From positions 186,001 to 250,000 of the IMG/VR virus record IMGVR_UViG_3300036781_000418: 64,000 bases of DNA, one strand, 5' to 3'. Position 1 is the stretch's first letter, and each line of letters starts with the position of its first letter. Made by a program: the position numbers and the translations under genes. The notes below the pieces were generated by a model. The model was not told the origin of the DNA, searched no databases, and saw only the letters and a list, made by a program, of their open reading frames with translations. Shown one piece after another: positions 3,992-57,111 of the stretch.

Positions 3992-5134
3992 ATGTCAATC
4001 AAAGGAAAAGCACTTGTCCTTATCGGACGGTGTGAACCACCCCACCTAGGGCACATGCACCTAGTTGCTGAAGCGGCCAAGAAGGCCGAGTTCGTTATCC
4101 TACTGCTGGGAAGCAGTGGTCGACCACGCAACAACAAGAACCCCTTTACCTTTGAAGAGCGCGCGGAGATTTTCTCCACATGGGCCGCCCTCCAAGGTGG
4201 TGGACTGAAGGATCGGTTGTACGTCCTGCCGTTGCGCGACTTCATGTACAACAACAACCACTGGATCCACCAAGTTCAGCAGAAGGTCAAGCACGCGCGC
4301 GACTTGGCTGAGCTGGAGCATGGCTGCACGATCAACGAGGTTCGGCTCACGGGCTCGGACCGCGACTCAACCACGTGGTACCTTCACGCGTTTCCGCAGT
4401 GGCACACCAACTTCCTGCCGCCGTTCACGATGCCTGGAAACTCGGACGTCAACGCCACGGCGATCCGGGCCGCGCTCTTCAACGACCAGTCCGTTGGGCT
4501 GGAGACGCTGCATGAAATCACGGTCGACTTCCTCGTGAACTTCCGTTCAACGGACGAGTTCAAGACGTTGAAGGCCGAGTACGACTTCATGCGTGAGTAC
4601 ATGCGGCCGTACGCCACCCTGCACCACCCACCGACCTTCCAGACCGTCGACGCCGTGATCGTTCAATCAGGTCACACGTTGATGGTGAAGCGCGCCAACC
4701 TACCTGGCTTCGGGCTGTGGGCCCTGCCTGGTGGCCACCTCAACGTCGACGAGTGGATTCGTGACGCGATCGTCCGTGAGTCGATTGAGGAGACTGGCAT
4801 CTGCTTCGGCACTGGCTCACGCGCCCGTGAGTACACCGAGGAGTTCATGAAGTCTCGGATTCGCGAGCTCAAGACGTTCGACCACCCTGAGCGGTCGCTG
4901 CGCAAGCGGTCCATCACGACGGCCGGGTACATTCGGCTGGACGACACGAAGGCCCTGCCACACGTCACTGGACAGAACATGCCGCTCTACGAAACGGGTG
5001 GTGTGATCATTCCTGAAACGTCGAAGGCCGCGTGGATTCCAAACGTGCTGCTTCCCTCCATGATGAATGAGATCTTCGAGGACCACCTCGACATCATCGA
5101 GGACCTGCAAGGTGCGATCTACGGAGTCGTGTGA
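3992..5134 (+). CDS. nadM: bifunctional NMN adenylyltransferase / ADP-ribose pyrophosphatase (NadM-Nudix)
   Basis: GRCEPPHLGH (HxGH), KNPFTFEER, NATAIR, TVDAVIVQSGH and Nudix box GGHLNVDEWIRDAIVRESIEETG. Confidence 0.9.
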   Translation: MSIKGKALVLIGRCEPPHLGHMHLVAEAAKKAEFVILLLGSSGRPRNNKNPFTFEERAEIFSTWAALQGGGLKDRLYVLPLRDFMYNNNHWIHQVQQKVKHARDLAELEHGCTINEVRLTGSDRDSTTWYLHAFPQWHTNFLPPFTMPGNSDVNATAIRAALFNDQSVGLETLHEITVDFLVNFRSTDEFKTLKAEYDFMREYMRPYATLHHPPTFQTVDAVIVQSGHTLMVKRANLPGFGLWALPGGHLNVDEWIRDAIVRESIEETGICFGTGSRAREYTEEFMKSRIRELKTFDHPERSLRKRSITTAGYIRLDDTKALPHVTGQNMPLYETGGVIIPETSKAAWIPNVLLPSMMNEIFEDHLDIIEDLQGAIYGVV

Positions 5135-8844: not shown

Positions 8845-10377
8845 ATGCAGACAATTATTCCCAAGAACGACGTCCTCGACGCCTCCAGAATGCGTCGTCG
8901 CGCCACCCCCGCCAAGCCACCGTTGCGCTTCAACATGGTGCTAGCCGCGGACTCCTACAAGTTCTCCCACCCGTTCTCGTACCCCAAGAACATCAGCGGC
9001 TTGTTCTCGTACATCGAGGCCCGGACACATGGTGCACACATCATGATTCCGGCCGGCTTCGAGGCCACGTTGCAGCGCTACCTGTCGGTGCCCATCACGA
9101 TGGAGGACATCGACGAGGCCGAGGCCTTCATGAAGCGCCACGGCGAACCGTTCGCCCGGAACGTCTGGGAGCACGTCCTCACCAAGTACCACGGCTACCT
9201 GCCCGTGATCATCCGTGCCGTGCCTGAGGGAACTCCCGTCAAGAGCAGCAACATCATGGTGTCGATCATGTGCGTCGACGAGCTGGTCGCCGAGAACATC
9301 TTCTGGCTGGCCTCCTTCCTTGAGACCTTCCTGCTCCGTGCCGTCTGGTACCCTACCACGCTGGCCACCAACGATTACGAGTCGAAGCTCGAGATCAAGC
9401 GCTTCTACAAGATTGCCGGTGAGGACCTTGCCGGCATCGACTTCGCCGTCCACTGCTTTGGCGCTCGAGGTACGACCTGTCACGAGCAAGCCGAGATCGC
9501 CGGTGTCCACGCCTTCATGTACAAGGGCTCGGACACGGTTGAGGGCATTCGCTACGTCAACCACTACTACGACTGCGAGATGGCCGCGTTCTCCGTGCCC
9601 GCCACCGAACACTCGGTCGCCACGTCGTTCGGGCTGACGAGTGAAGACGAAGTCCGCTACATCGACCATCAGCTGACGGCGTTCGCGAAGCAAGGTGCGA
9701 TCATCTCGCTGGTGGCCGACTCCAAGGACACGTCGCGCTTCGTGGATCACATCTGCACGACGTTCCATGACCGCATCGTCGACCTCCATGAACGGCTTGG
9801 TGTGAAGGTTGTCGTCCGTCCAGACAGCGGCGATCCGCTTGAGATCGTGCCGATGATCTTGGACAAGCTGGCCAAGGCCTTCCCGACCACTCGCACCGTG
9901 CACGGCTACATCAAACTGTACGGCGGCGTTGGTATCCTACAAGGTGACGGCGTCGACACCATGCTGATCAAGACGTTGCTCGGCAACATCATGGCCCGCA
10001 ACTACTCGCCTGCAAACATCATCTTCGGTTCGGGCGGTGCGCTCCTGCAGAAGGTTAACCGTGACACGCACAAGTGGGCGCAGAAGGGCAGCGCCATCTT
10101 GGTGAGGACTCCTGTCGCGGTCGGCGCGCACGGTGGCACCTTCACGTACGCGTGGCAAGGCATCGCCAAGGACCCCATCACCGACCCTGGCAAGAAGTCG
10201 AAGGAAGGTCTCCTGACCCTGATGCGGAACTCCTTCACCGGCCAGTACGCCACCATCCGCATCGACAAGGATCCGGTGAAAGACGAGTGGGTGGACGTGA
10301 TGGAGGACATCTACGACTGTGGACAGTTCTTCAACCTGTCCAACATGGACCAAATCCGCACACGCTGCGCCATCTGA
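8845..10377 (+). CDS. nadV: nicotinamide phosphoribosyltransferase (NAMPT)
   Basis: ADSYKFSH, SYIEAR, VWYPTT, FGARG, VPATEHS, VVRPDSGDP, LQGDG, FGSGGALLQKVNRDT, KDPITDPGKKSK. Confidence 0.93.
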   Translation: MQTIIPKNDVLDASRMRRRATPAKPPLRFNMVLAADSYKFSHPFSYPKNISGLFSYIEARTHGAHIMIPAGFEATLQRYLSVPITMEDIDEAEAFMKRHGEPFARNVWEHVLTKYHGYLPVIIRAVPEGTPVKSSNIMVSIMCVDELVAENIFWLASFLETFLLRAVWYPTTLATNDYESKLEIKRFYKIAGEDLAGIDFAVHCFGARGTTCHEQAEIAGVHAFMYKGSDTVEGIRYVNHYYDCEMAAFSVPATEHSVATSFGLTSEDEVRYIDHQLTAFAKQGAIISLVADSKDTSRFVDHICTTFHDRIVDLHERLGVKVVVRPDSGDPLEIVPMILDKLAKAFPTTRTVHGYIKLYGGVGILQGDGVDTMLIKTLLGNIMARNYSPANIIFGSGGALLQKVNRDTHKWAQKGSAILVRTPVAVGAHGGTFTYAWQGIAKDPITDPGKKSKEGLLTLMRNSFTGQYATIRIDKDPVKDEWVDVMEDIYDCGQFFNLSNMDQIRTRCAI

Positions 10378-12861: not shown

Positions 12862-12911
12862 ATCCTGACTAACTTGGTGTACGCGTAGCGTCGCCGAGTT
12901 AGAATGTACCT

Positions 12912-13205
12912 ACCATGTCGAAAGACACGGTGATTGTCGTAATTCGGCTTGAGTTGATGAGGGTAACACGGGGGTTCAACTCCCCCCAGCTCCACCAAAA
13001 GGGTTTACTGGAATCTTTCTGATGGGGCTGAACGGGTAATCGACTACGCTACTGAAATGATAGACGCGACATGCAAGGCGATCTGCACCGATGATGTTTG
13101 TCGGAAAGAAGCAAAATCTTTAAATGCTAACAACAGCGTTTACGCTCTCGCCGCTTAAAAACCGTGCGCAGCTGGGGCCGATCGCCTTATAATCCAAAGA
13201 TCACT
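12912..13205 (+). ncRNA. ssrA: circularly permuted (two-piece) tmRNA, tag ANNSVYALAA*
   Basis: T-arm plus CAGCTCCACCA (ends 12997) lies upstream of the GGGGCTG 5' end (13024); G3-U70 pair; resume codon GCT at 13126 after TAAAT; TAA at 13156-13158; outer ends approximate. Confidence 0.92.
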
Positions 13206-13229
13206 CAAGGGGCTTCGGCCCCTTGTTTT
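13206..13229 (+). terminator. intrinsic terminator of tmRNA
   Basis: CAAGGGGC-TTCG-GCCCCTTG-TTTT. Confidence 0.85.
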
Positions 13230-13792: not shown

Positions 13793-13869
13793 GACTCCAT
13801 AGCTCAGTTGGTTAGAGCAGCGGCCTTCAAAGCCGCCGGTCCTCGGTTCGAGCCCGAGTGGAGCCACCA
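13793..13869 (+). tRNA. tRNA with UCA anticodon (opal-reading), copy 1
   Basis: GACTCCA/TGGAGCC-ACCA acceptor; anticodon arm GCGGC-CTTCAAA-GCCGC; canonical D and T arms; short variable loop. Confidence 0.88.
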
Positions 13870-13928
13870 AATGTCGTCGTCCGTGGATGCGACGGATCAG
13901 GAGCTGTTGGCCTGAACTTTAGTCCATT

Positions 13929-14005
13929 GCGCCCATAGCTCAGCGGTCCAGAGCAACTTGCTTCAAACTTGTTGGTCCTCGGTTCGAATCCGAGTGGGCG
14001 CACCA
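13929..14005 (+). tRNA. tRNA with UCA anticodon (opal-reading), copy 2
   Basis: GCGCCCA/TGGGCGC-ACCA; anticodon arm ACTTG-CTTCAAA-CTTGT with two U-U mismatches. Confidence 0.78.
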
Positions 14006-29809: not shown

Positions 29810-29957
29810 TTCATAAACCCAAGAGTTACCGCTTGCAATCGGTTATCTACTTTAACTTGGTGTAAAAACCCGGAGTGCGGTTCGAGTCCGCACAACGCCC
29901 ATACTGGCTTCGGGGGCAATCTCCGAGAGCTACTTTTGTTGCTCTTGGGTTTATGAA
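29810..29957 (+). ncRNA. Y-RNA-like element A
   Basis: 16 bp outer stem TTCATAAACCCAAGAG/CTCTTGGGTTTATGAA; TACCG-N9-GGTTATC; internal T-arm GTGCGG-TTCGAGT-CCGCAC. Confidence 0.65.
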
Positions 29958-29966
29958 TTTTTCTGT

Positions 29967-30052
29967 GTGGACATGACTGAGAGGCTGAAGGTGACGGGCT
30001 GTAACCCCGTTCTGTAAAAAGCGCGTAGGTTCGAATCCTACTGGCCACACCA
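29967..30052 (+). tRNA. tRNA-Tyr(GUA)
   Basis: ACGGG-CTGTAAC-CCCGT; long variable arm; CCA. Confidence 0.9.
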
Positions 30053-30061
30053 AGTTTAGAT

Positions 30062-30135
30062 GCGGGATTCGTATAGTGGTATTACCTCAGCCTTCCAAGC
30101 TGATGATGAGGGTTCGATTCCCTTATCCCGCTCCA
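30062..30135 (+). tRNA. tRNA-Gly(UCC)
   Basis: TCAGC-CTTCCAA-GCTGA; U73-CCA. Confidence 0.93.
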
Positions 30136-30150
30136 CATTAAGAGGCTTGA

Positions 30151-30618
30151 ATGGCTAGAGGAAGAATTGAAGTCTCACGTGAGCAACTCCTCCAAGCAAT
30201 TGAATCGACAGATTCTGCCGTTCAAGCTTCTAAGCAGTTAGGATTGATGTACACCACGTTTATTCGCAGGTGTAAAGAGCATCAACTATATGCTCCAAAT
30301 CAAGGTGGTAAAGGAACTCAAAAACCTCGACCACAGATGAAAATCGCTCTTGAGGATATCTTCAACGGTAAACATTTGATGGATTCAAAAGCCATTAAAC
30401 GGAAACTGTTTGAAGCAGGTCTTAAGAAAGAAGAATGCGAGTGTTGTGGAATAGGTCCAGTGTGGAATGGCAAGAAGCTTACGCTTCAGCTTGACCACAT
30501 TGATGGAGATCGAACTCACAATGCTTTTGAGAATCTGAGAATTCTCTGCCCTAACTGTCACACTCAGACAGCCACATTTAGTAAGGGTAAAAATAGGACA
30601 CATGCGTCTGTGGCGTAA
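30151..30618 (+). CDS. HNH endonuclease (free-standing, homing-type)
   Basis: CECCG..LQLDHIDGDRTHNAFENLRILCPNCHTQT; AT-rich; stop lies inside the downstream tRNA-Leu. Confidence 0.9.
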   Translation: MARGRIEVSREQLLQAIESTDSAVQASKQLGLMYTTFIRRCKEHQLYAPNQGGKGTQKPRPQMKIALEDIFNGKHLMDSKAIKRKLFEAGLKKEECECCGIGPVWNGKKLTLQLDHIDGDRTHNAFENLRILCPNCHTQTATFSKGKNRTHASVA

Positions 30619-30689
30619 TTGGTAGCCGCGCTAGGTTGAGGGCCTAGTCCTATAATGGGGTGCAGGTTCGAGTCCTGTCAGACGCACCA
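30604..30689 (+). tRNA. tRNA-Leu(GAG)
   Basis: CTAGG-TTGAGGG-CCTAG; long variable arm; ACCA. Confidence 0.9.
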
Positions 30690-30696
30690 TGTTTTT

Positions 30697-30771
30697 GGGG
30701 GAGTACCTCAGTGTTAGAGGGCCCGCTTTTTAAGCGGAAAGTCGAAGGTTCAACTCCTTCCTCCCCCACCA
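30697..30771 (+). tRNA. tRNA-Lys(UUU)
   Basis: CCCGC-TTTTTAA-GCGGA; ACCA. Confidence 0.85.
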
Positions 30772-30775
30772 GTTT

Positions 30776-30891
30776 GAGAACCGTCGTTGATTGGTTATCG
30801 GAAAAGTCAGGGGTGCTTAAACCCCAGGATGAGCATGGTTCAAGCCCGTGCACCCTCGCAAGAGGTTTTACCGATCTGCATTTTTGTTCTC
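30776..30891 (+). ncRNA. Y-RNA-like element B
   Basis: GAGAAC/GTTCTC outer stem; AACCG-N9-GGTTATC; internal T-arm-like GCATGG-TTCAAGC-CCGTGC. Confidence 0.6.
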
Positions 30892-30901
30892 TCCGTTTTC
30901 C

Positions 30902-30996
30902 GACGAACCGTCGTCGAAGGGTTATCTAGTTCACGACTAAAGGGCGCGTATGTGTCCGGCTGCAGAAGCCATCACCCTTCACATCATTTGTTTGTC
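30902..30996 (+). ncRNA. Y-RNA-like element C
   Basis: GACGAAC/GTTTGTC and GAAGGGT/ACCCTTC stems enclosing three small hairpins; AACCG-N9-GGTTATC. Confidence 0.65.
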
Positions 30997-31000
30997 ACTT

Positions 31001-31075
31001 GGGCTTCTAGTATAGGGGGAATTACTACTGTCTTGCACGCAGTGAATCGGGGTTCGAGTCCCCGGAGGTCCACCA
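31001..31075 (+). tRNA. tRNA-Ala(UGC)
   Basis: ACTGT-CTTGCAC-GCAGT; G3-U70; ACCA. Confidence 0.9.
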
Positions 31076-31084
31076 AGTTTTAAT

Positions 31085-31161
31085 CGGAGTGTAGCGCAGT
31101 CTGGTAGCGCATCTGCTTTGGGAGCAGAGGGTCCCAGGTTCGAATCCTGGTACTCCGACCA
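31085..31161 (+). tRNA. tRNA-Pro(UGG)
   Basis: CGGAGTG; TCTGC-TTTGGGA-GCAGA; ACCA. Confidence 0.95.
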
Positions 31162-31221
31162 CGTTTTCGCACGGCACGGATGACCGTTATCATCCACACT
31201 ACTACGACTACAAGGAACTAA

Positions 31222-31509
31222 ATGGTACACGTAAAGATCATGTCCGGTGAGGACACGCACGATTCTTACCCAGGTAAGAACTACACGCTGATCACAGTCA
31301 ATGACCGAGATCGGATTCAGTTCGGCGAATGGGGTTCGCTCTTCGGTAACCCAGCCAACACAGCTGACGATCGCGGTGGAAACACCGAGGTGATGATCGT
31401 GATTCGCGAGAAGAGTTCAGAGCAGGAGACGTACCCGCTGTTGGGGAACGTCTACATCATGAACGATCAAGGTAAGACGATTGCGACTCGCCAGAAGAGC
31501 ATCAATTAA
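31222..31509 (+). CDS. hypothetical protein
   Basis: AAGGA RBS; 95 aa between tRNAs. Confidence 0.65.
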   Translation: MVHVKIMSGEDTHDSYPGKNYTLITVNDRDRIQFGEWGSLFGNPANTADDRGGNTEVMIVIREKSSEQETYPLLGNVYIMNDQGKTIATRQKSIN

Positions 31510-31516
31510 GAACAAC

Positions 31517-31624
31517 GCGGACGTAGCTCAGTTGGATTAGAGCTCGGCACACAAAACAAAGGCGGCCGGCTTGCCGATCAGTAGTGTGACGCGGTCAGAG
31601 GTTCGAGCCCTCTCGTACGCACCA
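31517..31624 (+). ncRNA. tRNA-like RNA with an expanded anticodon loop
   Basis: Normal acceptor, D and T arms with ACCA; CACAC/GTGTG stem closes a ~31 nt loop with no 7-nt anticodon loop. Confidence 0.7.
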
Positions 31625-31806
31625 AACGCGGACTCTCCCTGCTCACAGCGCTCGGAACGCCCATACAACCCATGGAAGAGCTCCTAGCTAGTACCTAGAG
31701 GCGGACTTTCGGCATCACTTAAAAACTGGTGCGGTTGGTGGTTAGCTTGTATGGTGCTCCCTGAGTAAAGAGGACCCGACCGGACAAGTCGCAAAACTGT
31801 TCCGAT

Positions 31807-31882
31807 GCAGGGGTAGCTCAGTTGGTAGAGTACTTGTTTGCCAAGCAAGACGTCGCGGGTTCGAACCCCGTTCCCTGCTCCA
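31807..31882 (+). tRNA. tRNA-Gly(GCC)
   Basis: CTTGT-TTGCCAA-GCAAG; TCCA. Confidence 0.93.
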
Positions 31883-31888
31883 AATTTT

Positions 31889-31978
31889 GGACACTTGGCC
31901 GAGAGGCTTAAGGCACCGGTCTTGAAAACCGACGGGCCCTTACGGGTCCCGTGAGTTCGAATCTCACAGTGTCCGCCA
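31889..31978 (+). tRNA. tRNA-Ser(UGA)
   Basis: CCGGT-CTTGAAA-ACCGA; long variable arm; GCCA. Confidence 0.92.
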
Positions 31979-31983
31979 GAACA

Positions 31984-32045
31984 TAGCAACCGCACGTGCA
32001 GGGTTATCATCCATTCGCTCTCCCTGTACAACCTCTTTGTTGCTA
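31984..32045 (+). ncRNA. minimal Y-RNA-like element D
   Basis: TAGCAAC/GTTGCTA and GTGCAGGG/CCCTGTAC stems; pyrimidine-rich loop; AACCG-N9-GGTTATC. Confidence 0.65.
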
Positions 32046-32056
32046 GTATTTCAGTT

Positions 32057-32180
32057 AGGGATGTCGTCCAGTGGTAGGACAGCCGCCTCAACGTCGTGAA
32101 TGACATCTTTAGTTGCGCAAGTAACCGCCGCTTCATGGTTATCCAAGCAGCTTACGTGGGTTCGATCCCCACCATCCCTA
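32057..32180 (+). ncRNA. tRNA (Gly-like) with the Y-type stem inserted in the anticodon loop
   Basis: AGGGATG/CATCCCT; D and T arms intact; ~53 nt insert AAC..CTTTAGTTGC-GCAA-GTAACCG-N9-GGTTAT. Confidence 0.7.
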
Positions 32181-32224
32181 ACCCCTTGACTTCAAGGGAA
32201 AGTATCCATTGGGTTCTTTCCTTT

Positions 32225-32354
32225 GGGGTCGTAGTGTAGTGGACAGCACGTTAACATCGATTGCTCCCTTTGTTGGACTTTGAATCCAACCGCTCGTGAT
32301 TGGTTATCTTTCTACAAAAAGACAGGATGGGTTCGAATCCCATCGACTCCACCA
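32225..32354 (+). ncRNA. tRNA-like RNA (G3-U70, ACCA) with the Y-type stem inserted 5' of the anticodon arm
   Basis: GGGGTCG/CGACTCC-ACCA; insert TAAC..CTTTGTTGGA-CTTTGAA-TCCAACCG-N9-GGTTA. Confidence 0.7.
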
Positions 32355-32367
32355 AAATTCTTTCCAT

Positions 32368-32496
32368 GCAGTCTTGGCGTAACGGTAGCGCGCGAACAGT
32401 CGTTCGCATCTTTAGTTGTCGCAAGGCAACCGTTCGTGAATGGTTATCTAAAGTACAAAGACGAGGTCCGTGGTTCAATTCCCGGGGACTGCACCA
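32368..32496 (+). ncRNA. tRNA-like RNA (ACCA) with the Y-type stem inserted in the anticodon stem
   Basis: GCAGTCT/GGACTGC-ACCA; insert AAC..CTTTAGTTGTC-GCAA-GGCAACCG-N9-GGTTA. Confidence 0.7.
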
Positions 32497-32564
32497 ACTA
32501 TTGGAGACGACAATGACAAACGAGAAAGGGCGATTGTGTTAGGTTAACTACACAAGGAGCCCAA

Positions 32565-32942
32565 ATGAGCCGAACCTTTCGGTGCAAGAACTACGAAGAC
32601 ACGCAGAACACGAGCTGGGACCGTCAAGGTCGCAAGATCGGTGGTTTCTACTGCGAGTACAGCTACGCGAACGAAGTCTACGACAGCAACCTTCACTGGG
32701 GCTGGCGGTACGTGCACATCTTTCGCCCTCCAACTCAGGAGGAGCTGATCAAGGCGTACTGGCGGAACCACGGCGAAAGCCGACACCGCTGCGCTCGCTC
32801 TCCCAGTCGGTACCACCGCGGCACGAGGATGGCGGAGAATCGTCGAATCAACAACCAGGAGCTGCATAAGTTCCTGAAGAACCCAGATCACGAGCCGATG
32901 CTCGAGGCCAACCCTCGAAACTGCTGGTGGGACTGGAGCTGA
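32565..32942 (+). CDS. hypothetical basic protein
   Basis: AAGGAG RBS; 125 aa. Confidence 0.7.
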   Translation: MSRTFRCKNYEDTQNTSWDRQGRKIGGFYCEYSYANEVYDSNLHWGWRYVHIFRPPTQEELIKAYWRNHGESRHRCARSPSRYHRGTRMAENRRINNQELHKFLKNPDHEPMLEANPRNCWWDWS

Positions 32943-33048
32943 TTTTCCGTTGTGAGCCTTGATCGGCCAAAGTCGCTGACTTATACGGAACCTGTGCAGC
33001 CTCATCAGCTGCACCGTGGTGACCATGGACAGTCACCGATCATTCAAC

Positions 33049-33135
33049 GCGGGTGTGGCGAAATTGGTGGCCGCGCTAGGTTTAGGTCCTAGTGGATTTA
33101 CATCCTTGCAGGTTCGAATCCTGTCACCCGTACCA
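33049..33135 (+). tRNA. tRNA-Leu(UAG)
   Basis: CTAGG-TTTAGGT-CCTAG; long variable arm; ACCA. Confidence 0.92.
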
Positions 33136-33299
33136 GTTTGGGGAGCATGGTTAGCGCCGTGTTCAGGCTAGCTTGGCCAAGCGGTTTAGTAGCGGACGGC
33201 CGTTCGCGAGCGACTTAGAGATGATGGTAGTGCTGTTCGACTCAGCGCCATCGAAAGCCACCCAAAACCCATAAATACTCCATACGTTTTGGAGTAGCC

Positions 33300-33629
33300 A
33301 TGAAGGTTGCACAGTTGTTCGAAGAGCTGAAAGCCTACACAGGTGGTCGGCTTTCAAAGACTCTCGAGAATGCAATGTTGGAGTTCTGCGATGCGTTTGA
33401 CATCGACAGCTTCTCGGTCTCAACTGAGAAGTTTCATCAGCCGCATCCAACTAAAGGTTGGAGCGATACGGTAAACGTGAAGAACTTCTTCATCAACATG
33501 GGGACTGAAAAGAACGCGACGCTGTTGAAACGGTACTTGAAGGACAAGGGCTTTGGAGTCGAAGATCGATACCGCCCTGAACATGTCGTCAATACTTGGA
33601 ACGTTCCAAAGAAGTTCAAGTCAAAGTAA
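33300..33629 (+). CDS. hypothetical protein with MKVAQLFEE N-terminus
   Basis: TAAATA at 33272; GGAG RBS. Confidence 0.7.
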   Translation: MKVAQLFEELKAYTGGRLSKTLENAMLEFCDAFDIDSFSVSTEKFHQPHPTKGWSDTVNVKNFFINMGTEKNATLLKRYLKDKGFGVEDRYRPEHVVNTWNVPKKFKSK

Positions 33630-33632
33630 CAC

Positions 33633-33720
33633 GCGTCGTGACCCTACATCGGTCTTCTAAGCCGATGACGAAAAAGAGTAGGATGGACGTCCACGGGTTC
33701 GATTCCTGCACGCCGCTCCA
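33633..33720 (+). ncRNA. D-arm-less tRNA-Arg(UCU)-like RNA
   Basis: GCGTCGT/ACGCCGC-TCCA; ATCGGT-CTTCTAA-GCCGAT nested in a CCTAC/GTAGG stem; T-loop TTCGATT. Confidence 0.55.
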
Positions 33721-33738
33721 TAACACAGAGGACCGATC

Positions 33739-34101
33739 ATGATTTTGCTTGAGTACCCCGACAACAAGAGCGCCCGCCAACACCTTACCTTGGGTAAGGA
33801 CTACGCGGTCGTTCGAGAGCTTGGCAACGGTCTCGTGATCGAGGCCGACAACTCAACTCCTGAGTCGCCCAACTTTCACACGCTGTTGGCTTCACGCTTC
33901 AAGGAAGTCGGTGTTGTGGTAAACCGTGACTGCACGAAAGCGAAGCCGATGCCGTTGGAGCTTGGACCGAGAGCGGTCGAGCTCAACATCATCTGGGACC
34001 ATGATGACATTGAAGACCTAGCTCCCGACCTTGACTCACGTTACGCCCACTTCAAGTGTGGTTCATGTGGGCACGATTGGTGGGCGGATTTAGGCGATTA
34101 A
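33739..34101 (+). CDS. hypothetical protein with C-terminal CxxC
   Basis: GAGGA RBS; KCGSCGHDW. Confidence 0.65.
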   Translation: MILLEYPDNKSARQHLTLGKDYAVVRELGNGLVIEADNSTPESPNFHTLLASRFKEVGVVVNRDCTKAKPMPLELGPRAVELNIIWDHDDIEDLAPDLDSRYAHFKCGSCGHDWWADLGD

Positions 34102-34104
34102 CTT

Positions 34105-34192
34105 GGAGATGTGGCAGAGTGGCCTATCGCACAACCTTGGAAAGGTTGAGGACTTTATCGTCCCATGGGTTCGAATCCCATCATCTCCTCCA
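34105..34192 (+). tRNA. tRNA-Ser(GGA)
   Basis: CAACC-TTGGAAA-GGTTG; long variable arm; CCA. Confidence 0.9.
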
Positions 34193-34198
34193 GACAGA

Positions 34199-34276
34199 AG
34201 CAGGGTAGCTCAGCCAGGTAGAGCGCTGGTCTCATAAGCCAGAGGTCGTGGGTTCAAATCCCTCCCGTTGCAACCA
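34199..34276 (+). tRNA. tRNA-Met/Ile2(CAU)
   Basis: CTGGT-CTCATAA-GCCAG; imperfect acceptor stem; ACCA. Confidence 0.75.
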
Positions 34277-34357
34277 ACACGTGGACCCTTGTTCACGGTA
34301 CAGCGACCGTAGCGTCGCAGTAGAATTGACTCATCAACAACGCATTGGACCGATGCT

Positions 34358-34669
34358 ATGCAACACAAGATGAACCAACTGATGCGTGTCAGCAAGACAC
34401 TTGGTTTCACTGAGTTCGCGTTTCCACTCGAACTCACGTACGGTCCAGCCTACGACGGCTACTGGATTGATCGAGTTGGACGTCTCTTTTCCACCAAGCG
34501 TGGTGAAGTTACGCCGCTGATCGCCAAGTGCACGGCCTTCGTCAAGGGCAACAGCTACGGCCTCATCATCCGTGGTAAGAACAAGTCGGTCTCTGGAACC
34601 GAACTGCTCCATGAACTGCGCAGCTCGCCCGAATGGCCGGTGCTGCTCGAACAATGGGGCAACATGTAA
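34358..34669 (+). CDS. hypothetical protein
   Basis: ORF between tRNAs; TAGAAT upstream. Confidence 0.55.
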   Translation: MQHKMNQLMRVSKTLGFTEFAFPLELTYGPAYDGYWIDRVGRLFSTKRGEVTPLIAKCTAFVKGNSYGLIIRGKNKSVSGTELLHELRSSPEWPVLLEQWGNM

Positions 34670-34675
34670 GATCAT

Positions 34676-34761
34676 GCGCATGTGGTGTAATTGGTAGCCA
34701 CACTTCTCTCAAAAGGAAGCGTCCGTAGGGCGTGTCGGTTCGAGTCCGACCATGCGCACCA
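34676..34761 (+). tRNA. tRNA-Leu(CAA)
   Basis: CTTCT-CTCAAAA-GGAAG; ACCA. Confidence 0.92.
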
Positions 34762-34893
34762 GGTGAGACCCCCGAAGTGACTAGGACGCGAGGCGGTCAT
34801 CGAGTAGAGGCGGCCACGGAATCGTGGCGGTAAGTAGTGAACACAACCTCCTCTACCGACCAGTGAGGTGACTGGATGAGAAAGCAGGGTTAA

Positions 34894-34993
34894 ACGCACT
34901 GATGAGCTGGTGAGAGTCCAGCGAAACGGGAAGGTGAACAGCCGATCGAGCGCTAGGTCGCGGCTCTCGACGCAGTATCCTTTCCGTATGCGT
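34894..34993 (+). ncRNA. type I hammerhead ribozyme
   Basis: Stem I ACGCA/TGCGT; core CTGATGA; stem II GCTGG/CCAGC; GAAA; stem III CGGGAAGG/CCTTTCCG; GTA cleavage triplet ending at 34988. Confidence 0.85.
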
Positions 34994-35007
34994 AAATAGA
35001 AACATAT

Positions 35008-35093
35008 GCTGGAGTAGCCAAGTGGTTGACGGCAACTGCCTTGTAAGCAGTCGGAGTTATCCCGCGCAGGTTCGAATCCTGTCTCCAGCTCCA
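35008..35093 (+). tRNA. tRNA-Thr(UGU) with an unusually long variable arm
   Basis: ACTGC-CTTGTAA-GCAGT; extra arm CGGAGTTATCCCGC; TCCA. Confidence 0.8.
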
Positions 35094-35336
35094 AGAAGTT
35101 CCAGGTGACTACGTGTAGGGGGTCTGGCCCAGTGCACACAGAAAATGCGTAGGATATTGGCCGTGAGAACCATGGTTTATGAGGCATGAGAAAAAGATTT
35201 GTCGGGACTGTGCCTCCGGAAACGACATGACCTGCACGAGAATAAGAGCAATGGTAAGCTTTGCAGGGTGCCACAAATATTTGTCAACGCGGAAGCAGTT
35301 GACCGGGGCTCTGTGTTTCATCCCCAACCTATCAAT

Positions 35337-35415
35337 GTCGAAGTGGGAGAGTGGATTACTTCCGACAGGCTGCAACCCTGTAGACGCATCGGTTCGATTC
35401 CGGCCTTCGACTCCA
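35337..35415 (+). tRNA. tRNA-Cys(GCA)
   Basis: ACAGG-CTGCAAC-CCTGT; U73-CCA. Confidence 0.85.
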
Positions 35416-35528
35416 AACGGGACCCTACGTAAGGGTAAAACGTCTGACCTGACGGGGAAACGCTTGAAGGGGCGCCTGACGGTGGGAGAAACAGACGACG
35501 AAACTGTAGGTCCTTCGGTTTCAACAAT

Positions 35529-35614
35529 GCGACTGTGGCGTAATTGGTAGCCGCGCAACGCTCAGAACGTTGTGGTCCTAGACCGTGGAGGTTCGAGTCC
35601 TCTCAGTCGCACCA
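35529..35614 (+). tRNA. tRNA-Leu(CAG)
   Basis: CAACG-CTCAGAA-CGTTG; ACCA. Confidence 0.92.
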
Positions 35615-35623
35615 TTGATCAAT

Positions 35624-35711
35624 AGCGGGGTAGAGCGTAGTTTGGTAGCGTGTTGGGCTCATAACCCAGCGTCGTAAGACCCCGGAGGTTCGAGTCCTCC
35701 TCCCGCAACCA
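35624..35711 (+). tRNA. initiator-like tRNA-fMet(CAU) with an extra arm
   Basis: 1:72 mismatch; GGG/CCC anticodon stem; CTCATAA loop; variable hairpin GTC-GTAA-GAC. Confidence 0.75.
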
Positions 35712-35718
35712 CAACAAT

Positions 35719-35844
35719 GGTCCAATAGTGTAGTAGCACGATCAACAAAAGCACATCATCATGGCGGTAGCCAAGCCTAGGAGAGCGCATCTCCCACTGA
35801 TGAAGGAGCAGGTGGAGAATCGGGACTCCTGCGTTGGATCACCA
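35719..35844 (+). ncRNA. tRNA-like RNA with a large structured central insertion
   Basis: GGTCCAA/TTGGATC-ACCA; short D arm; TCATCA/TGATGA stem; GCAGG/CCTGC T-stem with an oversized loop. Confidence 0.55.
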
Positions 35845-35849
35845 GAATT

Positions 35850-36014
35850 AAGCAACCGATAGATAACGGTTATCAGAAAGTAGCGTCGAAAGACTTGTGG
35901 GTTCGAGTCCCACCTGAGAGTCACCTAAGACGTGATGGTTTGTACTCAGTGGCGGAATTGGTAAACGCACAACTCCGGCCGCAAGGCCATCTCCGTGTCG
36001 CTCCTTTGTTGCTT
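35850..36014 (+). ncRNA. YrlA-like Y RNA (circularly permuted tRNA-Leu-like module)
   Basis: AAGCAAC/GTTGCTT outer stem; AACCG-N9-GGTTATC; then T-arm, loop-closed acceptor stem CTGAG/CTCAG, D-arm TGGCGGAATTGGTAAACGC. Confidence 0.75.
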
Positions 36015-36038
36015 TTCATAAACTAGAGGAACTTTCCC

Positions 36039-36485
36039 ATGTCAACCAAGTATGAACTCCACGTCACCACGTGGGAGTGTGATGCTGATCATCACTTGAC
36101 CAAGATTCTCGAGAATCTTAGCCGTGACGACGTTACCGCGTTCGTTGAACTGGCCAAGAAGTTCGCCTCAACACACGCCACACCACCGGGCGTCGGCAAC
36201 CACAGTGTGGCCGACGACGTGCTCGTTGAGGCGGTCCAGTCGGTGCTGACAAAGTACCCAGACGCTTACTATCTTCAGCTGCTCTTTGAACAAGACGCAC
36301 CTAAAGATTACCAAGGTGACATCAGCCTTGCTGACTTTTACTGGCAGGCCCTATGCGAGTCGCTGTTGGACTATCCAGTGATCGAGCCGTACCAAGACGA
36401 GTACCACTTTTGCCGCGTCTACTGCGTCCACAAGGTCTATGAAGTCCCAGTCGCGAAGGTCGACGTCACGGAGTGTTTCCAATGA
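36039..36485 (+). CDS. hypothetical protein
   Basis: GAGGA RBS. Confidence 0.7.
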   Translation: MSTKYELHVTTWECDADHHLTKILENLSRDDVTAFVELAKKFASTHATPPGVGNHSVADDVLVEAVQSVLTKYPDAYYLQLLFEQDAPKDYQGDISLADFYWQALCESLLDYPVIEPYQDEYHFCRVYCVHKVYEVPVAKVDVTECFQ

Positions 36486-36754
36486 GACCGCTGAACGCAC
36501 GCCAGATCGGCGAGCTTGAAGCCCGTGAGTTTCTCGGCGACGAAACGTGGAAGCGTTGGAAGATCGCGTATGACGAAGCCATGGGCTACCGCAAGACGCT
36601 GAAAGGCAAACCGACGGAGGAGCAGCTGCTGACCCTCCAGAACAACGCAATGGACATCGAGTTCTACGGCTCCGTGCTGTTCCACTCGGCGACCCTTGCA
36701 AACCGAAACATGTGCGGCTGCACTCGATGCGGCCAAGCACGACAGAACAAGTAA
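36473..36754 (+). CDS. hypothetical protein
   Basis: Likely start ATG 36482, coupled to the upstream stop. Confidence 0.55.
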   Translation: MFPMRPLNARQIGELEAREFLGDETWKRWKIAYDEAMGYRKTLKGKPTEEQLLTLQNNAMDIEFYGSVLFHSATLANRNMCGCTRCGQARQNK

Positions 36755-36881
36755 ACCGCTCGTTGTTGATTATCCCTTCCACCCTTAGGGACCTTAGTGT
36801 AACTGGTAGCATTCCGGATTGATACTCCGGGGGATGGGTTCGAATCCCTGGTCAAACTCGACGACACTTCTTTGTTTACTT
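36749..36881 (+). ncRNA. Y-type stem enclosing a near-complete tRNA-Ile(GAU)
   Basis: AAGTAAAC/GTTTACTT and GTTGTTGA/TCGACGAC stems; inner D-arm, CCGGA-TTGATAC-TCCGG, T-arm; no CCA. Confidence 0.65.
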
Positions 36882-55731: not shown

Positions 55732-56835
55732 ATGGAACGATACCTGGTCGGCGGTGCAGTCCGCGACGCGCTGATGAACGTGACACCAAAAGACCGTGAC
55801 TGGGTCCTTGTCGGCGCTACGCAGCAGGACATTGACGACATGGTCAAGGAAGGGTACCAGTGGGTTGGTGCCGACTTCCCCGTGCTGATCCACCCAAAAA
55901 CGAAAGAGGAGCACGCCCTCGCCCGAGTCGAACGTAAAGTCGGCCATGGCTACAACGGCTTTGAGGTGGACACGGAGGGCGTCACCCTCGAGCAGGACCT
56001 GGCACGTCGCGACCTGACCATCAACGCGATGGCTTGGGACACGAGCCCATCGATGGTGTACGAAGACGACATCATCGACCCGTACGGCGGTCGCAATGAC
56101 ATCAAGCACAAGATCATCCGTCACACGACGATGGCCTTCGTTGAAGATCCGCTCCGAGCCCTGCGTGTCGCGCGCTTCGCCGCCCGCCTCAGCTTCAGCG
56201 TCCACCCCACCACACACGACCTCATCAAGCACATGGGAACGTCCGGTGAACTGGAACACCTGACCGACGAACGTGTCTGGGCCGAGGTGAAGAAGGGCCT
56301 AAGCGGTCCGCACCCCACCGTCTTCATGTACCAGCTCTACAACCTCGGCATCATCAAGCACTGCGCAGTACTGCGTGAGGTCTTTCCATGGACCTACGAG
56401 TTCGTCGCCTACGGCGTGACGAAGTACCTGCGCATGGTCAAGGAGGAAGATCGCTTCGAACTGGGCCTGGCCTGCATGATGGCGTGTGGTGACGTTGAAA
56501 AGATCAAGGCCATTCCGTCCAGGACGAAGAAGGTCTACAACAACATCGGCTACCTGAACGAGATCCATGACTGGTCAAACGTGGCGGCCGACAAGTTGGT
56601 GACGGTCATCACGAAGATCGGCGGCCTACGTGAAGGCACGATGTTTGACGACATCGTCACCTGCCTCCAGCTGACGAAGCCAACGCAGATCGAGATCATC
56701 GACATCTTGACGGCCAGCCGCATGGTGATGCAGCAAGTTCGAGCCGACCAGTTCCCAGACCTTGAAGGCCAAGCGCTCGGGGCCGCGATGATCCAAGAAC
56801 GTGCGAAGCGCGTTGCTGAGCTGTTGTTACAATAA
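55732..56835 (+). CDS. cca: tRNA nucleotidyltransferase (CCA-adding enzyme)
   Basis: [53 protein letters not shown]. Confidence 0.93.
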
Positions 56836-56862: not shown

Positions 56863-57111
56863 ATGTCCCGCAACAGCAAAGGTTACCGCACCGTCGCTCG
56901 CCGCAAGGCCAACACACTGGCCCGTAAGAACGGCAACCCAGGACCGGCAAAGACGATGCCGCAGCACGGCAAGCGCTGGACCTACCGCCACAACCCCGAA
57001 GTCGCGAAGCGCGTCGCGGAAATGATCAAGGCGACGGCGGTCGCCGATCGCCAAGCCAAGACCTCCGGCAAGGCGCTCCTCGCCAAGGCCGGTGGCGCAT
57101 CGAAGGAGTAA
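56863..57111 (+). CDS. small basic protein
   Basis: AAGGA RBS; K/R-rich. Confidence 0.65.
   Translation: MSRNSKGYRTVARRKANTLARKNGNPGPAKTMPQHGKRWTYRHNPEVAKRVAEMIKATAVADRQAKTSGKALLAKAGGASKE

Follow-up and report, generated by a model that had tools for sequence, protein, structure and literature searches.

Nine elements in a phage tRNA array

The window analysed here is a stretch of 64,000 nucleotides, positions 186001–250000 of the virus record IMGVR_UViG_3300036781_000418 (342,591 bp). At 29.4–37.4 kb it holds 21 canonical tRNA genes, found with ARAGORN and Rfam, and these surround nine elements (E1–E9) that share the motif AACCG-N9-GGTTATC. A first-pass annotation of the sequence had described the nine as structured RNAs of the Y RNA or YrlA kind. 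We report their structure, their relatives in other phages and their relation to a gene on the same contig for Ro60, a ring-shaped RNA-binding protein. A look-up of sequencing runs that hold the region listed a single soil-metagenome DNA run and no RNA run. A search of the window for the motif with at most one mismatch gave 10 matches against 0.12 expected, and 0 of 100 shuffled sequences reached 10. Nine matches lie on the + strand (at 29827, 30779, 30906, 31988, 32123, 32288, 32428, 35854 and 36754). They bear out the nine copies that the first-pass annotation had placed in the tRNA array, together with the two copies carrying one substitution (TACCG at 29827 and GATTATC at 36754) and the constant spacer, which is 9 nt in all nine. 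The tenth match, at 2835 in a long open reading frame (ORF), is probably due to chance. A relaxed motif scan of the window added one match only, at 56868, within an ORF.

Each element contains a rod made of two helices, P1 and P2, with an asymmetric internal loop between them. P1 has the form GUUxxx/xxxAAC, that is GUU plus variable nucleotides paired with variable nucleotides plus AAC, and is 5 to 14 bp long (up to 23 bp in relatives). P2 is about 9 bp long and pairs (A/G)YCG+N5 with the last 5–6 nt of the "spacer" plus GGU; 8 or 9 of its 9 positions are paired in most copies, 6 in E1 and about 4 in E8. The internal loop is pyrimidine-rich and measures 5 × 7–8 nt, with CG plus 3 nt on one strand facing about 7 nt that end in YUUU(N) on the other (NNYUUU). 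The outer flanks of P2 are UAAAC and UAUC. UAAAC is kept chiefly in the embedded copies described below, and UUAUC, the YUAY element after the second helix, is invariant in 9/9 copies. The annotation had noticed flanking helices that differ in sequence and keep their pairing (GAGAAC/GTTCTC, TAGCAAC/GTTGCTA, AGTAAAC/GTTTACT and GTTGGA/TCCAAC) around a conserved pyrimidine-rich loop. These outer helices are real and are P1, and the loop is present as just described; the second helix, which lies partly within the "spacer", had been overlooked.

The rod occurs in two topologies. In the wrap type (E1–E4, E8 and E9) the ends of the RNA lie in P1 and a variable insert closes P2. In the embedded type (E5–E7) a loop caps P1 (GCAA twice) and the rod is enclosed by a tRNA-like body that has acceptor, D and T arms and whose ends are free. 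One architecture underlies both types, which are related by circular permutation. The nine elements are as follows; L numbers denote contigs and loci, and R1 is a covariance model built from the rods.

29811–29955, + strand: E1, wrap type, a degenerate copy with UACCG. P1 of 14 bp (29811–29824/29942–29955) plus 2 bp past a mismatch; P2 6/9 (29922–29930/29835–29843); the insert has one hairpin resembling a T arm (GUGCGG UUCGAGU CCGCAC) and another hairpin.
30776–30891, + strand: E2, wrap type. P1 of 6 bp (30776–30781/30886–30891); P2 8/9 (30870–30878/30787–30795); besides a hairpin, the insert has a T arm (GCAUGG UUCAAGC CCGUGC) and an acceptor-like hairpin with a GNRA cap (CCUC GCAA GAGG), without a D arm.
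30902–30996, + strand: E3, wrap type, YrlB-like, without a tRNA-like arm. P1 of 7 bp (30902–30908/30990–30996); P2 of 7 bp (ACCCUUC/GAAGGGU), with C-G in place of the usual U·G and G·U.
31984–32045, + strand: E4, wrap type, a minimal stand-alone module of 62 nt. P1 of 7 bp (31984–31990/32039–32045); P2 of 8 bp (CCCUGUAC/GUGCAGGG).
32057–32180, + strand: E5, embedded type. The rod (32093–32143) replaces the anticodon loop within the stem GCCGC/GCAGC; P1 capped by GCAA; P2 8/9; CCA not encoded; Rfam tRNA 47 bits with a 57-nt anticodon-loop insert; R1 47.3 bits.
32225–32354, + strand: E6, embedded type, CCA encoded. The rod (32256–32308) interrupts the anticodon stem on its 5' strand, and a short hairpin whose loop is CUACAA(A) comes next; P1 GUUGGA/UCCAAC; P2 9/9; R1 61.8 bits; Rfam matches the tRNA-like ends only (tmRNA model, 26.6 bits); the orthologue in L006 has the loop CUCAUAA.
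32368–32495, + strand: E7, embedded type, CCA encoded. Rod at 32399–32448; P1 capped by GCAA; P2 9/9; a 9-nt loop at the anticodon position; imperfect T stem; R1 60.5 bits; orthologue at L005:9537–9592.
35850–36014, + strand: E8, wrap type, with the full YrlA arrangement of T arm, closed acceptor stem and D arm. P1 of 7 bp (35850–35856/36008–36014); P2 weak, ~4 bp; acceptor stem of 5 bp with a closing loop of ~22–26 nt; the best Rfam match of the element alone is YrlA (18 bits, E 0.16), over model positions 29–81 (T arm, acceptor stem and D arm).
36749–36881, + strand: E9, wrap type, in which the leader and trailer of a whole tRNA-like gene form the rod. P1 of 8 bp (36749–36756/36874–36881); P2 8/9; anticodon loop UUGAUAC (GAU); GAUUAUC variant, whose variant A pairs with U; Rfam tRNA at 36790–36854, 31.5 bits.

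Of the "varied tRNA mimics" of the first-pass description, E5–E7 are full tRNA-like bodies with the handle in the anticodon region, and E3 and E4 carry no tRNA-like arm. E6 and E7 were detected solely by their ends or by R1.

Covariation, for which the annotation had proposed a test, was found in both helices by a shuffle test. In an alignment of 15 embedded rods from 13 contigs, 92.4% of the cells are paired versus 77.3% after shuffling (0/500), and the covariation score is 0.469 versus 0.185. Controls with slid partners gave 21–58% pairing, and RNAalifold, run unaided on the rod alignment, returned the same two helices. In 35 modules from the arrays, covering both topologies, pairing at the six variable positions of P2 is 90% versus 57% after shuffling of the partners (maximum 67%). 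P2 also holds two near-invariant G·U pairs (U·G in 13/15 and G·U in 14/15 rods). Unconstrained minimum free energy folds give P1 and P2 in E2, E3, E4, E6 and E9.

A dispersed repeat in arrays that carry HNH and GIY-YIG homing endonuclease genes could be a motif acting in DNA, such as a promoter, an operator, a homing-endonuclease site or a small mobile repeat. Compensatory changes keep the helices despite drift of the sequence, and the opposite strand would have C·A mismatches where the two near-invariant G·U pairs lie. It was concluded that the rod functions at the RNA level and not at the DNA level, because the G·U pairs are conserved, all copies lie in a single orientation, and the pairing is kept whether the two halves are adjacent, as in the embedded type, or ~150 nt apart (up to ~155 nt in the wrap type). 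A DNA-level motif is thus extremely improbable. The same low standing is given to a small self-cleaving ribozyme, for which two circular permutations in tRNA contexts would be a parallel to the hammerhead and twister ribozymes. No ribozyme family in Rfam matched any element, even at E ≤ 10. The rod is a simple nested structure without junction or pseudoknot (an apparent pseudoknot proved to be the nested helix P2), and its clear relatives are the protein-binding Y RNAs. The ribozyme reading was rejected. Three more candidates were rejected: a K-turn (no tandem G·A), a CRISPR-repeat mimic (the AAACCG resemblance is only chance) and an archaeal bulge-helix-bulge intron.

Likeness to Y RNAs and a clade of phage Ro60

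YrlA RNAs, which lie within 4 kb of Ro60, have a GNCGAAN0-1G motif, a YUAY element and a tRNA-like domain (PMC4201824). Their tRNA-like domain closely mimics a tRNA whose acceptor stem is closed (bioRxiv 10.1101/312249). The Rfam YrlA consensus consists of a lower stem, a 5 × 8-nt internal loop, a 7-bp helix, CUA (YUAY) opposite uAuG and the tRNA-like domain; the rod has an equal layout with nearly equal dimensions. In mycobacteriophage Bxz1, gp220 is a Ro60 (TROVE plus vWA_Ro60) with YrlA just upstream. The flanks of this YrlA are GGCCGAGAGUUUGUCGGUUACC ... GCUUAAACGCCGGUGG (the return flank is also given as GAGCGCUUAAACGCCGGUGG), and the neighbouring YrlB reads GGCCGAAGGCUCGUCGGUUAUC. CCG-N10-GGUUAYC and UUAAAC thus occur in Bxz1 at positions that match those in the window modules. 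General Ro60 profile scans, of which the best 80 matches were taken, extended the comparison: the 80 other Ro60-encoding viral contigs carry 1 to 7 copies of CCG-N8-11-GGUUAYC just upstream of the gene on the same strand, and 148 Ro60-upstream modules parse as lower stem, CG-bulge, GGUUAYC and P2 (N9 in 59% and N10 in 31%).

The window elements share with YrlA and YrlB (RF02553; Chen et al., 2014, PMC4201824; Bxz1) a stem-bulge-stem handle in which CG opens the 5' bulge strand, a distance of 9–10 nt to GGUUAYC, a second helix and, on the return strand, a flank of the UAAAC type. E8 adds a tRNA-like effector in the YrlA order of T arm, acceptor stem and D arm. In both groups several copies occur per genome, together with a Ro60 gene and often in or beside phage tRNA arrays. 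Phage-encoded Y RNA-like molecules with a 5'-3' stem flanking a bulge are also known as Yrl1 and Yrl2 of Thermus phage phiLo, which has its own phiRo60 (PMC12135203). The phiLo RNAs bind the phage Ro60 and the particle engages host PNPase; they differ from the window elements in lying directly upstream of Ro60, in their dependence on CGAA and in having no tRNA body.

Bxz1 has a fourth Y-like module (L041:5744–5890, at ~95.7 kb of the record) with the sequence GCCAAGG-CCGACGAGUAGUUCGGUUAUC ... CAUCAUGU-CUUGGC and a T-arm-like hairpin. It lies in the tRNA array, with tRNA-Met and tRNA-Cys on either side, and the Ro60 gene is 34 kb away.

No TROVE domain was found among the 30 large ORFs of the window, and none by tblastn in the array loci, in agreement with the first-pass annotation. 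Its suggestion to look for TROVE outside the window was productive: a Ro60 homolog is present on the same contig at ~293.7–295.3 kb (L431:3001–4605; TROVE 5.8e-27, vWA_Ro60 2e-48). A TDNETW DNA pattern had matched contig L005, and a clade-specific Ro60 profile (A5) then detected the Ro60 of the window genome. Ro60 of this clade is present on 9/13 module-bearing contigs (the window genome, L004, L005, L006, L008, L017, L021, L024 and L036) and lies only 4–8 kb from the array in L004, L006, L017 and L024. For the short fragments L002 and L018 a Ro60 contig occurs in the same sample. Module-bearing genomes of at least 340 kb carry this Ro60 clade in 6/6 cases.

The modules of the window and of the other arrays form a subtype. 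Their P1 ends in AAC/GUU, their 5' bulge strand reads CG-Y-Y and their 3' bulge strand ends in YUUU, whereas most Ro60-adjacent modules have GGC/GCC, CG-R-A (CG-GA or CG-AA, 74%) and C-[A/U]-[U/C] at these places. The AAC-CG subtype accounts for 21/54 modules near Ro60 genes of the clade versus 3/181 near other Ro60 genes. Many contigs of the clade have two AAC-CG-type modules 0.3–0.6 kb upstream of Ro60. One example, directly upstream of the gene, is GGAAC-cggau-...-agacuUUUU-GUUCC and a second is GUUCGAAC-cguag-...-ugcucaUUU-GUUCGAGC. These figures, which are counts and not a phylogeny, suggest that the handle and the Ro60 protein co-vary.

Several results weigh against the assignment of the window elements to Ro60. 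The Ro60 of phiLo binds through a CGAA bulge in which each nucleotide contributes 3–4-fold to the dissociation constant (PMC12135203). Neither CGAA nor CGGA occurs in any of the nine window copies, nor is GNCGAA found; their bulges read CGCUU, CGUCG (twice), CGCAC, CGCCG, CGCUC (twice), CGUUC and CGAUA, with only C-CG kept. CG-Y-Y or CGAU in place of GNCGAA/CGAA, AAC/GUU in place of GGC/GCC and the YUUU bulge strand thus set the window copies apart from YrlA and YrlB. The Rfam YrlA search advised by the first-pass annotation gave a negative answer, in that no window element reached the threshold of RF02553 (69 bits), and neither E2 alone nor a scan of the 8-kb array gave a YrlA match. This threshold is a poor test for phage members, because the bona fide YrlA of Bxz1 scores only 32.5 bits. 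The Ro60 gene lies ~44 kb past the window end and 57–78 kb from the elements, not within 4 kb on the same strand as is typical of known Y RNAs, and no module was found within 3 kb of it. In addition, no Ro60 was found on the module-bearing contigs L019/L038 and L032 (101–175 kb).

The altered contact nucleotides (CG-Y-Y for CG-R-A, AAC for GGC) and the long distance to the gene would also be expected if the rod is derived from a Y RNA and acts independently of Ro60, either with another factor or as a processing signal of the array (an RNase III or RNase E site, or a leader-trailer stalk). The rod of E9 is a leader-trailer stem around a tRNA, and the relatives with P1 of up to 23 bp point the same way. 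Such a reading has to account for the same subtype directly upstream of same-clade Ro60 genes and for the presence of that clade in all six of the large module-bearing genomes, and a pure processing stalk needs no conserved bulge or flank sequences. The partner-gene search inside the arrays found only HNH and GIY-YIG homing endonuclease families common to them. No alternative partner is visible, because these are the only conserved array genes. We regard a Ro60-independent role as unlikely.

The nine elements are quite probably Y RNA-type (YrlA/YrlB-like) handles that the phage's own Ro60 would bind. The Y RNA label, which the first-pass annotation had based on architecture and motif similarity, is now supported by the YrlA layout, the Ro60-adjacent modules, the Ro60 of the window genome itself and the clade-linked subtype.

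Some other genes recur at the Ro60 loci. An HNH_5 protein of ~190–220 aa is encoded 1–2 kb upstream of Ro60 on the same strand (L431:951–1616 in the window genome). It is present at ~35 other loci (e.g., L391, L395, L404 and L427) with 37–52% identity, in nearly the whole module-linked Ro60 clade, and seldom occurs near Ro60 of other clades; a functional partner seems a better description of it than a stray homing endonuclease. A YqeY-like ORF (L431:2263–2703, Pfam 4e-14) directly upstream of Ro60 is found in the window genome only. An HD-domain ORF downstream of Ro60 (L431:4991–5797) recurs in six other loci of the clade.

Rods inside tRNA bodies

An IMG/VR pattern scan for the embedded form found other phage contigs, six of them of 340–370 kb, and the covariance model R1 found 25 copies of the rod. 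All R1 copies are in tRNA-array loci; none was found in the 80 unrelated Ro60 loci except a marginal one in L083 (E 0.45). tRNA-embedded rods occur directly upstream of Ro60 in L349, L342 (loop CUUCUAA) and L355. Blastn of the elements against isolate phages gave no match. The nearest isolate is Ralstonia phage RsoM2USA, with 41% amino acid identity in one protein; it is not in the summary of tblastn Ro60 matches, and no module was found in the 40 kb of it that were examined.

The rod of E6, E7 and most relatives interrupts the 5' strand of the anticodon stem at about nt 27/28 to 29/30, and the remainder of the stem and a loop come after it. With the rod set aside, some relatives show canonical anticodon arms (GUU, GUC, GCU, CUU and CAU). 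Orthologues with the same body have other loops (AUC, AUU, AUG, ACU, ACA, AGA or a 9-nt loop) or none, and decoding is seemingly not conserved, because orthologous tRNA bodies differ in the anticodon loop.

Could the rods of E5–E7 be tRNA introns, excised to leave ordinary decoding tRNAs, with the Y RNA resemblance secondary? Once the rod is removed, relatives regain an anticodon stem of 5 bp and a canonical loop of 7 nt (CUGUUAA for Asn GUU in L005, CUGUCAA for Asp GUC in L018, CUCUUAA for Lys CUU in L024 and CUCAUAA for Met CAU in L006). The canonical tRNA set of the window is without Asn, Asp, His and Ile, and "enigmatic" tRNA introns are known in megaphages (PMC6784885). The same rod is also found outside tRNAs (E3 and E4), and in E1, E2, E8 and E9 it surrounds a tRNA-like domain and has its ends in P1; the intron reading leaves these non-tRNA copies unexplained. 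In silico removal of the rod followed by ARAGORN works for some relatives and not for the window copies; none of E5–E7 has a canonical anticodon loop. The insertion point varies between 27/28 and 29/30 in the stem, or lies in the loop, and some orthologues have non-decoding or odd loops (AUC, ACU, 9-nt or none). No group I intron or ribozyme family appeared among the Rfam matches of any element (E ≤ 5–10), and the module is homologous to Ro60-linked Y RNAs. We conclude that excision as an intron is a distinctly improbable account of E5–E7. The intron-containing tRNA genes of Lak megaphages (PMC6784885) resemble the embedded copies in being oversized, in having their insert in the anticodon region and in being missed by bacterial tRNA finders. 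They show no apparent relation in sequence or structure, and the window inserts are Y RNA-like and also occur outside tRNAs.

The embedded copies differ from YrlA in being permuted: P1 is capped, the acceptor stem is open, some copies encode CCA, and the handle is an insertion in a tRNA. Another parallel is the YrlA of M. smegmatis, which is cut by RNase P and receives CCA (PMC4201824). Once opened in this way it is bound by Ro60 and has an open CCA-tailed acceptor stem and a tRNA-like domain joined to the handle, as is predicted for E5–E7. Cleavage of its closed loop leaves two pieces, whereas E5–E7 are encoded open, as one piece, with the handle closed as a hairpin.

Further observations were made on the arrays. 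Orthologues with the acceptor sequence GCCGAUG and others (L004, L017, L018, L024, L036 and L019) have the loops GUC, AUC, CUU, ACU and UAU. Embedded copies often have GUN anticodons (Asn and Asp) or their A34 variants (AUU, AUC and AUG). The arrays of the window (30151–30618), L002, L005, L018, L021 and L024 contain free-standing HNH and GIY-YIG/NUMOD3 (Seg-like) homing endonuclease genes. In the window, 31517–31621 is an oversized tRNA-like gene (Rfam tRNA, 38 bits) with a ~22-nt loop on the anticodon stem CGGCA/UGCCG, a ~20-nt variable region and no Y-like module. A tRNA-like sequence at 33632–33717 has a T arm and a long extra arm (weak match to the tRNA-Sec model, 26 bits, E ~0.1). Between tRNA-Leu and tRNA-Thr, 34885–34930 matched Hammerhead_3 weakly (18.8 bits, E 4.5), with CUGAUGA...GAAAC on either side of a GCUGG/CCAGC stem; stems I and III are not visible, so the match is probably due to chance. 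The phage genes also include a two-piece (permuted) tmRNA, two UCA-anticodon tRNAs called as tRNA-SeC, a CCA-adding enzyme (PolyA_pol head domain, 55732–56835) and the NAD-salvage genes NMNAT/NUDIX and NAMPT; this gene set lies at 12886–13228, 13793–14005, 3992–5134, 8845–10377 and 55732–56835 of the window.

Proposed mechanism and significance

A mechanism can be put forward from the features above. The tRNA array would be transcribed and the tRNA-processing machinery would release the elements. Ro60 would bind the rod made up of P1, the loop with CG plus 3 nt opposite NNYUUU, and P2. The other end of the rod would carry a variable effector. E3 and E4 have none; in E1, E2 and E8 it is a tRNA-like domain, partial or permuted; E9 holds an entire tRNA, flanked by its leader and trailer; and E5–E7 have a tRNA-like body whose acceptor end is free. 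In this last group the rod sits in the 5' strand of the anticodon stem (E6 and E7) or in the anticodon loop (E5). The embedded copies and E9 would have RNase P-type acceptor stems, and the RNAs would be matured by RNase P and CCA addition. E5 would need the addition of CCA, presumably by the phage CCA-adding enzyme. E8, with its 5-bp acceptor stem and long loop, could open like the M. smegmatis YrlA. If known Ro60-Y RNA particles are a guide, the RNAs would act as a tether or a gate for Ro60, and the tRNA part would bring the particle to tRNA-recognising factors.

Candidate downstream roles of the particle are a tether for an exonuclease as in RYPER, an engagement of tRNA-recognising enzymes or host anticodon nucleases, and the surveillance or repair of tRNA; the first-pass annotation had put forward anticodon-nuclease decoys and tethers for RNA repair or decay. 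Any one of these roles taken singly has at best a small chance of being right. It is a tentative idea, which we think possible rather than likely, that the embedded copies are matured as tRNAs by RNase P and CCA addition and are perhaps aminoacylated, and would be tRNA bodies with a Ro60 handle on the anticodon stem. If this is true, the chimeras could bring Ro60 and a recruited nuclease or repair enzyme to proteins that recognise particular tRNAs, such as anticodon nucleases of the host or synthetases. Another possibility is that they label some of the phage tRNAs for protection or quality control that depends on Ro60. The rapid turnover of the anticodon loop and the over-representation of GUN and A34 fit an arms race with tRNA-targeting defences, and do not show one.

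Phage Y RNAs that adjoin Ro60 are already known (PMC4201824; PMC12135203). In the literature searched, we found no report of nine or more Y-like modules dispersed in a jumbo-phage tRNA array far from Ro60, of a Y RNA subtype without CGAA that is tied to a Ro60 clade, or of the handle in the anticodon stem of tRNA bodies with an open acceptor, which is a permutation of YrlA; a prior mention is possible. These Y RNAs would lie far from Ro60 and lack CGAA, and therefore searches based on adjacency, on CGAA or on RF02553 would undercount the class. The rods would also explain, in structural terms, a class of phage tRNA genes that are oversized and "intron-like".

The finding bears on two questions, the binding partners of the tRNA-like domain of bacterial Y RNAs and the reason for the link between Ro60 systems and tRNA biology. 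This phage clade would offer a set of natural constructs, in which a Ro60-type handle is joined to nothing, to tRNA fragments, to whole tRNAs or to open CCA-bearing tRNA bodies. With them it would become testable which proteins co-purify with which chimera and whether the chimeras are charged. A variant bulge that co-varies with the Ro60 clade would likewise be a way into the specificity of Ro60.

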